64,000 nt of DNA from Octopus sinensis. Lineage: Eukaryota. A program made the translations under genes and the position numbers. The stretch spans positions 10,292,001-10,356,000 of the forward strand of contig NC_043021.1 in assembly GCF_006345805.1 (NCBI RefSeq), in the 5' to 3' direction. Positions 509 through 38,400 of this stretch are shown here, in pieces (the stretch's first letter is position 1; every line of letters starts with the position of its first letter). The notes below the pieces were generated by a model. That model did not search any database. It worked only from the letters and a program-made list of their open reading frames with translations, and was not told the DNA's origin.

Positions 509-3500
509 CTGGGAAAACAAAAAACAAAAAGAAAAAGTGGATAATTATTAGTTCCAAATTTTGGCACAAGGCCAGCAAGTTCGGGTGGTGGGTGTGGAGG
601 CTGTAGGTGGAGGCTGTAACCCCGAAAGGATGAAAAGCAAAGTCGACCCCGACGGAATTTGAACTCAGAACGTAAGAACGGATGAAATACCGCTAAGCAT
701 TTCGTCCGGTTTGCTAACGATTCTGCTACCTCACCGCCTAGACAACAATAATAATAATCCTCTCTACTAAAGGCACAAGGCCTGAAATTTATGGGGAGGG
801 GGACTAGTCGATTACATCAACCCCAGTTTATCACTGGTACTTAATTTATCGACCTCGAATGGATGAAAGGCAAAGTTGACCACGGCGGAATTTGAACTCA
901 GAACGTAATGACAGACGAAATACCGCTAAACATTTCACTCGGCGTGCTAACGATTCTCAATGCCTTAATAATAATAATAATAATAATAATAATAATAATA
1001 ATAATGATGATGATGATGATGATGATGATAATAATAATAATAATAATAATAATAATAATAATACTTTCTATTATAATCCCAAGGCCTGAAATTTTAGGGG
1101 AGGGCGCTAGTCGGTTACATCGATCCTAGTGCGTAACTGGTAGTTATTTCATCGACCTCGAAAGGATGAAAGGCAAAGTCGACCCCGGTGGAATTTGAGC
1201 TTAGAACGTAGCGGCAGACGGAATACCTATTTCTTTACTACCCACAAGGGGCTAAACCCAGAGAGGACAAACAAGGACAGACAAGCGGATTAAATCGATT
1301 ACATCGACCCCAGTGCGTAACTGGTACATAATTTATCGACCCCGAAAGGATGAAAGGCAAAGTCGACGTCGGCGGAATTTGAACTCAGAACGTAACGGCA
1401 GACGAAATACAGCTATGCATTTCGCCCGGCGTGCTAACGTTTCTGCCAGCTCGCTGCCTCAACAATGGGATGATTATTTAAAATACATGTCATTGGTGAT
1501 TAGACTGAAATGATAGATTAGGAACTGTCTGATGGCAGTTTGTTGATAATACTTACAGGTTAAATCTCCCCATCCAGCAGCGATACATCTTGAGGTACCA
1601 AAGTTTTCTCCTTGATTGGCCATAGGTGCAAACTTGACACATCTCCCTTCGCTTAGTGACTCGTTAAGTGTCAATATGGCAATATCATTCTCTTGAAAAG
1701 GAAAAGGTACGTATATTATTTATTTAGATATGTTAAAAATGCACGCATACTCGCACGCAAGCACACCCACCCGCACTCATGCACACACACACACACAACA
1801 CACACACACACACCACACACACACACACACACACACACACACACACACACACATATATATATATACGTCTACCAAATCCACTCACAAGGCTTTAGTCGGC
1901 TCGAGGCTATAGTAGAAGACACTTGTCCAAGTATAAATTTACATATATTAGCCAGAAAAATCCGTGATATACTTAGTGCGCGACAGGTGAACCGCGATGT
2001 ACTGAGTGAGCGATATGTTAACTTCGATATGGTAAAGGATTACTGTAAAAAGGATTATATATTCTCGATTTAAAGATTGAAAACATATCTATATCGCTAA
2101 CACACACACACACACACACACACACACACACATATATATATATATATACGTCTACCAAATCCACTCACAAGGCTTTAGTCGGCTCGAGGCTATAGTAGAA
2201 GACACTTGTCCAAGTATAAATTTACATATATTAGCCAGAAAAATCCGTGATATACTTAGTGCGCGACAGGTGAACCGCGATGTACTGAGTGAGCGATATG
2301 TTAACTTCGATATGGTAAAGGATTACTGTAAAAAGGATTATATATTCTCGATTTAAAGATTGAAAACATATCTATATCGCTAACACACACACACATATAT
2401 ATATATATATATATACGTCTACCAAATCCACTCACAAGGCTTTAGTCGGCTCAAGGCTATAGTAGAAGACACTTGCCCAAGTATAAATTTACATATATTA
2501 GCCAGAAAAATCCGTGATATACTTAGTGTGCGATAGGTGAACTGCGATGTACTGAGTAGCGATATGTTAACCTCGACATGGCAAAGGATTACTGTAAAAA
2601 GGATTATATATTCTCCATTTAAAGATTGAAAGCATATCTATATCGCTAACAAACGGCTTAGAGTATCTAGTGATACTCCACTTTAAATGAAAATCGACTC
2701 TTTTTCCTTTAATTCCCAGATCTTCGCGGAAAGCTATGTTGTTTTCGCTATATCTCTCTATCTAAATGTACGAAGATGGTTATGTACTCGCGGGACCCGT
2801 GAATATTTCACGGAATTAATGGTAAATTTATTGGGATATTTCTGAAAACTTTATCCAAAGAATCTGAAAAAAATAGTTGCTCAGTTGCTAATCGTTGAAA
2901 AGTGAAGGAAATTGGAATACGATGATTACTTAATGCACTTTATATACTTTATGCACAATTTTATAGACTTAATACACAACACTCTGCCTCTTTCTCCTTC
3001 AATTTTCGCCTTCTCTCTTTTTCTCTTTCCTTTTTCTTCCACTCTTTCCTTTTCTCTTCAATTCAATCACATGAAAACGTTACAGATGGGCTAAGTAACG
3101 GAGGAAAAAAACTTAGTTAAAAAAACAATTTACACATTTCATTCACCACCACCTCTCGCTCTCCCTCCCCTCCACAGAGAGGTACTATTACAGAGGTTGA
3201 GAAAGAATATGTGTAAGCAAGAGAAACAGAGAATGAGAAAACGAGAGAGAAGAGAGAAACAAACAGAGAGACAACAGGGAGAGAATCGGTTGAAAACTGC
3301 AGAAGGTTTTAGAGAAAAACCCGTGTAAAACACTGTTTTTCCTAGTTTCTTGCTTTACGAGGGAGCTCTGGGCAAAATATTATAGTGCATGACCATCCTT
3401 GGCTCATAAGTAATGTGTGTGTAAAGTTTGGTGAAAATCAGTTGAAAACTGTAGAAATGCATACGTACTACATACACGCGCGCGCACGCACGCACGCACA

Positions 3501-35400: not shown

Positions 35401-38400
35401 CTAACCACTGAGCCATGCGCCTTCACACAAACACACACACACACAAACACACAAACACACACAACACACACACACACACACACACACACACACACAAACA
35501 CACACACACACACACACACACACTCACTTATATATATCTGAGATCCCCTTCGGTCATGACTGACCATGGGATTGCACCTAGGAAGTTACCCTCCCAGGCA
35601 CAAGTCCGTGCAAGGTTGTTTATGGAAGGGTTAGGGTTAGCCACGCGCCTTCACTTGACAGTATATAGCAGTTGATGAAACATTGGCACTTAGTGACTGA
35701 CAGAGAGGGGTGGTGTGGGACGGGAGAGAAAATATGGGGAAAGATACAAGGCGCAAGAGTGGCTGTGTGGTAAGTAGCTTGCTTACCAACCACATGGTTC
35801 CGGGTTCAGTCCCACTGCGTGGCACTTTGGGCAAGTGTCTTCTACTATAGCCTCGGGCCCACCAAAGCCTTGTGAGTGGATTTGGTAGACGGAAACTGAA
35901 AGAAGCCCGTCGTATATATTATGTATATATGTGTATGTATATGTTTGTGTGTCTGTGTTTGTTCCCCCAACATCACTTGACAACCGATGCTGGTGTGTTT
36001 ATATCCCCGAAAATTAGCGGTTCGGCAAAAGAGACCGATAGAATAAATACTAGGCATACAAAGTATAAATCCTGGGGACGATTTGCTCGACTAAAGGCGG
36101 TGCTCCAGCATGGCTTCAGTCAAATGACTGAAACAAGTAAAAGGGTAAAAGAGGTGTAGATGTGGCTGTGTGGTAAGAAGCTTGCTTCCCAACCACATAG
36201 TTCCGAGTTCAGTCCCACTGCGTGGCATCAAATAAAAGGAAAAGAATAAAAGAAAATCCACAATTATGGGTAATACTTACTAATTAGGTATTTAGTGTGT
36301 ACATATTCACCATGGTTCACAATTTTGCTTACGCTTCTTGCCTGAGGACCAAGATTCCACTTATGGTTGGAACCAATATTTACTGTGATCTTTCGGACGT
36401 TTCCTTCCCTAAAATCAAGCAAAACGAAATTTTTTAACTGATACTAACCGATACAAAATTTGATATTGACAGATGCTAAATGACCAAAGTTCCTTGAAAC
36501 ATGCTGTTATTGATCAAAAATTCTACTGTGCATTACCAAGCACCCTGTGGTGTGAGTTCCATTAATATTGTAAAACTAATGTGTGGGGTCTCTTAACTTT
36601 TTGTGTTACGTCTGTGCGTAATTATATCTGCTTCTTAAACTAAGTTGGATTTTGCAGTAGTGATATGAAAGACACAGGGTAAAATAACACGAAGAATTAA
36701 CGCACATAATGTGTTGAAGAATGATTAGAGTTTTAAACATTTTAACAACTGACCTTAGATGAAAAAGGAAAACTGAAAATTCCAATAGTGAAATACGATT
36801 CACAGTAAAACCTAATCAAATTATATGTAATTTTGAATATGATATTGGTTTTAATTTTTGGCACCAAGGCCAACAAGTTCGGAGGAGTGAATGAGTCAAT
36901 TACATCAGTACTTAATTTATCGACCGCCGAAAAGATGAAAGGCAAAGTAGATCCTTACGGAATTTGAACTCAGAAGGTAGCGACAGACGAAATACTGCTA
37001 AGCATTTTGCCCGGCGTGCTAACAATTCTTATTTCTTTACTGCCCACAAGGGGATACACACAGAGGGGACAAACAAGGACAGACAAACGGATTAAGTCGA
37101 TTATATCGACCTCAGTGCGTAACTGGTACTTATTTAATCGACCCCGAAAGGATAAAAGGCAAATTGACCTTGGCGGAATTTGAACTCATATTTAGCGGCT
37201 GACGAAATACCTATTTCTTTACTACCCACAAGGGGCTAAACACAGAGGGGACAAACAAGGACAGGCAAACGGATTAAATCGATTATATCGGCCTCAGTGC
37301 GTAACTGATACTTATTTAATCGACTCCGAAAGGATGAAAGGCAAAGTCGACCTCGGCGGAATTTGAACTCAGAACGTAGCGACAAACGAAATACCGCTAA
37401 GCATTTCGCCCGGCGTGCTAACGATTCTTATTTCTTTATTGCCCACAGGGGGCTAAACATGGAGGGGACAAACAAGGACAGGCAAACGGATTAAATCGAT
37501 TATATCGACCTCAGTGCGTAACTGGTACTTATTTAATCGACCCCGAAAGGATAAAAGGCAAAGTTGACCTCGGCGGAATTTGAACTTAGAACGTAGCGAC
37601 AGACGAAGCATTTCGTCTGGCGTGCTAACGTTTCTGCCAGCTCGCCGCCGTAATGTTGAATGTGGGTGGATTTGGAGACAGAAACTGTGGCTGTATTTAC
37701 CTCGATAAGTTACTATCAACCTTTATATTGTACAAACTAAAGAAAGAAACTATATTCGTGATGGCCAAATGATGAAATATTAAGGAATGGAAACGTCAAT
37801 ATATACGATATATACTTACAAGCAATGAGCTGCTGTCACTACGTGTGTAGCATCAATCAAAGTACCTCCACACATACCAACTGTATTATCGGAAGGTGTG
37901 TTGTAAACTTGGAGATGGACAATCGATGGAAATTCGCAGTTTCGTGCTGGAGACCCATCGACAATTTGGGTCTCAGGTGCTGAAAGAAAACCACAAAAAG
38001 AACCATTTTATATACATTTAGATAAATCGTTCTTCGATGTCAGCGATATGTATAATTTTTATACGTAGAACTGGATCTACAGTGATCCCTCGTTTATCGC
38101 TGTAGATTGGTTCCGAGACCGGCCGCGATAACTGAATTTCCGCGAAGTAAAGACACCATATTTACAGTATTTACTTAACGTGTATTTGGACTTTTAGAAT
38201 CTTCCCTGTACTGTTAACAACCCACCCATTACAGTAGTCTATTAATAACAAGGACAACTGCTAAGCAATAACACTTTAGATTTAAAAAAAATAAAGATTG
38301 TTACTGTTACACTGGCCAGATTACAAAATAGAAAGCTGTGATTCGTCGTCTCTCTCCATTGCATCAATCACAGCCCGTCTTAAGTTCAAATACCCTTGTA

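Follow-up and report, generated by a model that had tools for sequence, protein, structure and literature searches.

A strictly co-occurring Cys25/Cys117 pair in three tandem octopus S1A proteases: a probable fifth disulfide shared with molluscan relatives

The window analysed here, a stretch of 64,000 nucleotides from Octopus sinensis (contig NC_043021.1 of assembly GCF_006345805.1, forward-strand positions 10,292,001 to 10,356,000), is AT-rich and dense in microsatellites and carries three genes, referred to as A, B and C, for S1A serine proteases whose products share two cysteines outside the canonical disulfide pattern, at chymotrypsin positions 25 and 117. The protease exons were located by motif scans and by tblastn with bovine chymotrypsinogen A, which also served as the reference for numbering, and gene models were built from tblastn templates followed by manual reading of the splice sites, which gave GT-AG at every internal junction (Table 1). 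The final exon of gene A, which bears Ser195, lies beyond the start of the window. Because the product of C is 100% identical to the O. sinensis protein P0004 and that of A is contained within P0010 (O. sinensis 'trypsin, alkaline C'), the splice models of these two genes can be regarded as validated; the product of B is 96% identical to P0001, an N-terminally truncated model from O. vulgaris. This and other public O. vulgaris models of the cluster have defects, with P0001 and P0021 beginning inside the gene and lacking the exons that bear Cys25 and His57, P0027 skipping the exon 3 region and P0019 starting with an unrelated N-terminal exon. The window sequence supports complete six-exon genes instead, a point of relevance to annotation because several database models of these genes are without the exon bearing Cys25 and His57.

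The products have the hallmarks of the S1A family. The Pfam PF00089 Trypsin profile is covered by B over positions 1-220 of 220 and by A over positions 1-176, where the window edge cuts it. His57, Asp102, Asp194, Ser195 and Ile16 are all present in B and C; in A, His57 and Asp102 lie within the window and Ser195 is present in its ortholog P0010. Residues Ser189, Thr190 and Gly216 of B and C make up a pocket of the chymotrypsin/elastase type. The three proteins are 53-61% identical to one another, and two differences among them suggest that their substrate subsites have diverged: relative to A and C, B has a six-residue insertion, GDPEDY, at the end of exon 3 in the 99-loop region directly before Asp102, and residue 192 is Glu in A (read from P0010), His in B and Gln in C. 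A and B lie head to head and are associated with a 347-bp inverted repeat of 90.8% identity, with one arm inside intron 1 of A and its partner upstream of the first exon of B; the repeat contains a decayed signal-peptide-like reading, ALCSLLFSLSEHFYG, and may have been left by an inverted duplication from which the A/B pair arose.

Protein searches returned only cephalopod proteins as top matches, down to approximately 38% identity. A, B and C are 56-62% identical to sequences named SP1 in the databases, and in a FastTree phylogeny they fall within a cephalopod gland clade (n=37, support 0.989) that has the Cys25/Cys117 pair in every member. Their sequences assign them, as tandem paralogs, to the 'venom' clade of secreted S1A proteases from the cephalopod posterior salivary gland, alongside 'SP1-Abd-7', 'SP1-Par-1', 'SP1-Oct-1' and the Octopus kaurna 'S1 type peptidase', from which they show no family-level difference. 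A cephalopod-specific clade of salivary-gland serine proteases has been discussed before (PMC7656900), and published work provides the context for expression and action in the posterior salivary gland (PMC7656900, PMC7693380). Based on these papers and on the database names, secretion of the A, B and C products from the salivary gland and their action on prey are putative.

Counted from Ile16, mature B and mature C contain exactly 10 Cys each, and mature A has eight within the window, to which ortholog P0010 adds two in the exon outside it. In a MAFFT alignment to bovine chymotrypsinogen A, the Cys of B occupy columns 25, 42, 58, 117, 136, 168, 182, 191, 201 and 219/220, the last ambiguity being a one-column shift within a gapped loop. 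Eight of the ten in B and C occupy the canonical 42/58, 136/201, 168/182 and 191/220 positions, with the pairing of these bonds assigned by homology, and Cys25 and Cys117 are the sole Cys left over. The local alignment is gap-free at both of these, F27-P28 and V118...L123 matching the reference, and therefore the numbering as 25 and 117 holds for A, B and C. No Cys is found in any of the three at positions 1, 22, 122 or 157, residues 22 and 157 being Ala and Lys, and the pro-peptide, (G/V/A)P(E/K)TQ, is a Cys-free stretch of 4-5 residues; the signal peptides, which are removed, contain two Cys in A and one each in B and C. A sequence-only reading of this window had described this inventory, namely ten Cys of which eight are canonical, the extra two at 25 and 117 in all three proteins, and the absence of Cys from positions 1, 22, 122 and 157 and from the pro-peptides, and our gene models and alignment bear it out in full. 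Cys25 belongs to the N-terminal segment that runs from Ile16 to the first beta-strand, and Cys117 to the linker that joins the two beta-barrels.

Conservation of the pair among A, B and C alone reflects shared ancestry rather than independent evidence and proves little. We therefore draw on a census of 1128 S1 domains, compiled from protein searches and from a profile search against 1.84 billion representatives; the ranking of the profile search was dominated by multi-domain proteins, and it yielded hundreds of S1 domains. Both Cys are present in 65 of these domains and neither in 846, while 207 have a gap in place of position 25 or 117 and 10 are discordant, with one Cys only. The Cys117-only cases among these 10 are mostly misaligned Cys122 residues that follow insertions, and they include the partial or mis-modelled P0019 (mis-modelled N-terminus), P0026 and P0278; the other three are Cys25-only and were not individually examined. 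With these three set aside, a single Cys25 or Cys117 was never seen in a complete, well-modelled protein, and across relatives the two Cys are either both present or both absent.

The carriers extend well beyond octopus. Every coleoid salivary-gland protease retrieved that is complete and correctly modelled has the pair (SP1-Abd, SP1-Par, SP1-Oct, SP1-Sep, SP1-SepT and the O. kaurna 'S1 type peptidase' by database name), as do proteases of seven gastropod genera, of which Babylonia was matched in a first search and prompted the second search that led to Haliotis, Lottia, Pomacea, Littorina, Nucella and Bulinus. The pair is also present in each domain of a group of two-domain S1 proteases from marine metatranscriptomes (P0186, P0391-P0394, P0400, P0409 and P0432), which came from the profile search and a third protein search. 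This P0186 group is abundant in marine metatranscriptomes (loci L001-L004, on short contigs), each of its domains has Cys25 within the motif C-E-W-P together with Cys117 and Cys122, and its nearest named relatives are polyserase-like proteins of fish and tunicates, which are approximately 40% identical and are without the pair. The pair had been put forward as a candidate lineage-specific fifth disulfide; given its presence in all sampled coleoid salivary-gland proteases, seven gastropod genera and the marine-metatranscriptome group, 'lineage-specific' is too narrow, and what the pair marks, judging from the sequences, is a subfamily and not A, B and C or octopus alone.

We also considered whether the two positions could be familiar ones in displaced form. 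Cys117 as a shifted Cys122 and Cys25 as a shifted Cys22 are both ruled out by the gap-free local alignment. For Cys117 the same follows from the gastropod members and the P0186 group, which carry Cys117 and Cys122 five residues apart (for example ...YRCIQPICLP and ...STCINTACLP); since the two coexist in one protein, Cys117 is a separate position.

Within an alignment of 34 carriers, mean column identity is 36% and 32 of roughly 250 aligned positions are invariant. All ten Cys are among these invariant columns, including C30 (position 25) and C129 (position 117), and the carriers reach down to 33-36% identity with the octopus proteins. Exactly 10 Cys are found in the domain of 35 of 40 carriers. 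Their architectures are of three kinds: single-domain cephalopod proteins, gastropod mosaic proteins that have Cys1/Cys122, and two-domain proteins with a pair of their own in each domain. The activation site of A, B and C is Gln15-Ile16, at the start of exon 2, and the P1 residue is Gln in 30 of 40 Cys25/Cys117 carriers and His in another 5; among other S1 domains, it is Arg in 53 of 84. A trypsin-like enzyme is thus ruled out as the activator.

With both Cys present at fixed positions, strictly co-occurring and invariant, we infer that they probably form an intramolecular fifth disulfide in the mature enzymes. Such a bond is favored because the two are the only Cys without a canonical partner and the total is even. 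Their invariance in an alignment of otherwise divergent carriers fits a structural disulfide, and the persistence of the pair in three different architectures argues for a bond within the domain. This bond would fasten the N-terminal segment onto the inter-barrel linker; it would descend from an ancient S1A subfamily, molluscan or possibly wider, and strong purifying selection would have maintained it. Of what had been proposed for the pair, the bond itself thus stands as the likely reading, on the strength of strict co-occurrence, invariance and the lack of any other partner, and the lineage label does not.

An AlphaFold2 model of mature C has high confidence, with a predicted local distance difference test score (pLDDT) of 95.1, a predicted template-modelling score (pTM) of 0.92, and pLDDT values of 95 and 97 in the 10-residue blocks that contain the two Cys. 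Foldseek identifies it as an ordinary two-barrel S1A fold, with template-modelling (TM) scores of 0.85-0.90 to trypsin, elastase, tryptase and matriptase and approximately 31% identity to the best matches. Covariation was computed as corrected mutual information (MIp) and by mean-field direct coupling analysis (mfDCA) on domains that lack the two Cys (793 domains and 30381 pairs for mfDCA). The known contacts 136-201, 57-195, 55-102, 21-156, 26-157 and 27-157 were recovered by mfDCA, as were 29-122 (rank 26), 29-120 (rank 84) and 28-120 (rank 174); the stretch directly following position 25 therefore runs alongside the one directly following position 117. The block adjacent to the Cys positions, 28-31 x 120-122, falls within the top 0.4% by mfDCA. 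For the Cys positions themselves the signal is weak, with 25-119 at rank 517, 24-117 at rank 563 and 25-117 at rank 1207 (top 2-4%), a result compatible with proximity and not significant.

Several observations weigh against a bond between Cys25 and Cys117. In the model of C, residues 22-29 have no beta-bridge according to DSSP, which gives no sign of main-chain pairing with the 117 region, and the coupling of block 24-27 x 117-119 in Cys-free relatives is weak, in the top 5.7% of blocks. No solved structure with the pair was found by a full-length search of the PDB, by Foldseek or by short queries for each Cys motif. The best PDB matches are crayfish trypsin (2F91), fire-ant chymotrypsin (1EQ9) and earthworm fibrinolytic enzyme (1M9U), at E=2e-28, TM 0.86-0.89 and approximately 30% identity, and these differ from the octopus enzymes in that the alignments of 2F91 and 1EQ9 have no Cys at 117 (1M9U was not inspected residue by residue); at position 25, 2F91 has no Cys and the alignment of 1EQ9 starts after it. 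Lastly, the co-occurrence of the two Cys may represent one gain followed by long retention and not many independent events.

The main alternative to a bond is that both Cys are conserved and not bonded to each other, existing as free thiols or forming intermolecular bridges in dimers or with another saliva protein. The weak 25-117 coupling in Cys-free relatives would agree with this, as would the location of both sites, which are expected to be near the surface. We nevertheless consider it unlikely, because two invariant unpaired Cys would, as a matter of general knowledge, be unusual in secreted S1A enzymes, because neither Cys occurs singly in complete, correctly modelled sequences, and because the pair is kept in single-domain proteins, in mosaic proteins with Cys1/Cys122 and in two-domain proteins alike. 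Much less probable still is a rearranged set of disulfides, with a 'canonical' Cys as the partner of Cys25 or Cys117: homology is all that assigns the connectivity, but the other eight Cys sit in canonical columns within the motifs CGG...TAAHC, C-x-AAGWG...LYC, DEC...LCAG and STC-x-GDSGGP...C220, and the model is a standard S1A fold of high confidence. Equally remote is a pair without structural role, retained as a phylogenetic relic among close paralogs, which the 53-61% identity of A, B and C and the compatibility of the data with a single origin would allow, since the carriers range to 33-36% identity across cephalopods and gastropods with both Cys among so few invariant columns, and invariance despite such divergence is a signature of selection and not of drift.

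We examined the origin of the pair with a tree test from which both Cys columns had been removed. Keeping all carriers in one group was not rejected (p-value of the approximately unbiased test, p-AU, 0.85) and gave a tree 37.9 log-likelihood units better than a quick free search, which needed three state changes; a single ancient gain with strict retention ever since is therefore plausible, as far as these sequences go. The subfamily may reach beyond molluscs, because annelid S1 sequences cluster with the O. kaurna gland proteases in a published analysis (PMC5778601).

The disulfide patterns of S1A enzymes provide close points of comparison. The non-core disulfides of this family are not the same in every lineage and have effects on stability, on autolysis and on how the zymogen is tethered. 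In chymotrypsin, the non-core Cys1-Cys122 bond anchors an N-terminal piece to the inter-barrel linker. The proposed 25-117 bond would resemble it in anchoring N-terminal chain to the linker, at a position five residues from 122, but its partner would be residue 25 of the mature chain and not residue 1 of the activation peptide; the octopus enzymes lack both Cys1 and Cys122, and in the gastropod relatives and the P0186 group Cys122 accompanies Cys117, which makes these two distinct features. In trypsin, Cys22-Cys157 fastens the N-terminal segment, residues 20-27, to the main body of the protein. Cys25 of the octopus proteins lies in this same segment, whose placement is confirmed by the couplings 21-156, 26-157 and 27-157, but residue 157 is in the C-terminal barrel and not in the linker, and A, B and C have Ala22 and Lys157.

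By analogy, a stabilising role for the bond would be reasonable, and this effect and any protection from autolysis are, like the bond itself, putative. The suggestion of a link to autolysis had drawn on Arg117, the autolysis site of mammalian cationic trypsin, and nothing found here ties that site to the octopus enzymes. A more far-reaching proposal would be that an undescribed fifth disulfide defines an old molluscan, perhaps lophotrochozoan, subfamily, accompanied in cephalopods by an unusual Gln/His15-Ile16 activation site and a short pro-peptide, and that it pins the N-terminal segment to the linker and gives unusual resistance to unfolding or to cleavage in the 117 loop; we put this forward tentatively, as possible and on balance doubtful.

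The genes themselves are known, and the 25/117 pair is probably an undescribed variant of the variable S1A disulfide patterns. It goes unmentioned in the accessible literature on these proteases, and a prior description in subscription papers is possible. The catalogue of S1A disulfides would gain one position from a strictly conserved 25-117 pair, and Cys25 followed by Glu-Phe/Trp-Pro, together with Cys117, would be a simple sequence marker of the molluscan subfamily. The value of this is incremental, with no long-standing question opened or settled. The dominant protein family of octopus saliva, whose function is yet to be assessed (PMC7656900), belongs to the subfamily so marked.

Table 1. 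Coordinates of the protease genes, their Cys25 and Cys117 codons and other features, as positions in the window. The span 1557-37979 first given for the pair runs from the outer edge of exon 4 of gene A to that of exon 2 of gene C.
Feature	Position	Strand	Basis
Gene A, S1A protease, 5 of 6 exons in window	363..6907	-	splice model; Pfam Trypsin E=1.8e-26
Gene A exons	6859-6907, 5967-6120, 3560-3687, 1557-1691, 363-508	-	splice reading
Gene A activation site	6103-6120		
Gene A Cys25 codon TGT	6077..6079	-	exon 2
Gene A Cys117 codon TGT	1639..1641	-	exon 4
Gene B, complete S1A protease, 6 exons, 259-residue precursor	12169..19834	+	splice model; Pfam Trypsin E=9.3e-46
Gene B exons	12169-12217, 12846-13005, 14269-14408, 15464-15598, 17814-17959, 19685-19834	+	splice reading
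Gene B activation site	12846-12863		
Gene B Cys25 codon TGT	12887..12889	+	alignment
Gene B insertion GDPEDY	14380-14408		
Gene B Cys117 codon TGT	15514..15516	+	alignment
Gene C, complete S1A protease, 6 exons, 254-residue precursor	32258..38829	-	splice model; Pfam Trypsin E=4.5e-46
Gene C exons	38784-38829, 37820-37979, 36281-36408, 34260-34394, 34020-34165, 32258-32407	-	splice reading
Gene C activation site	37962-37979		
Gene C Cys25 codon TGC	37936..37938	-	alignment
Gene C Cys117 codon TGT	34342..34344	-	alignment
Inverted repeat, 347 bp, two arms	6353-6699, 11350-11688		
Repeat unit of ~183 bp, tandem pairs	5494-5860, 37030-37607		
Repeat unit of ~183 bp, weaker copies	near 25763, 40409, 45671		
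Tandem repeat of 72-bp unit	28238-28663		
Open reading frame, 209 residues	43167-43796	-	
ATGT-type microsatellite	50493-52105		
Assembly gap	57614-57713		

The remainder of the window holds several repeats. A unit of approximately 183 bp, TATTT(A/C)TTTACTAC...GGATTAAATCGATTATATCGACC..., is found in tandem pairs within the second intron of both A and C and in weaker copies elsewhere, and looks like a dispersed short interspersed element. An open reading frame containing ...LRWYGHVTRM... matched no Pfam family at E<=0.01; it resembles the C-terminal part of ORF2 of a non-long-terminal-repeat (non-LTR) retrotransposon. The 72-bp tandem repeat comprises 5.9 copies with 98% matches, the ATGT-type microsatellite extends over 1.6 kb with a strong GC skew, and the assembly gap consists of 100 N.

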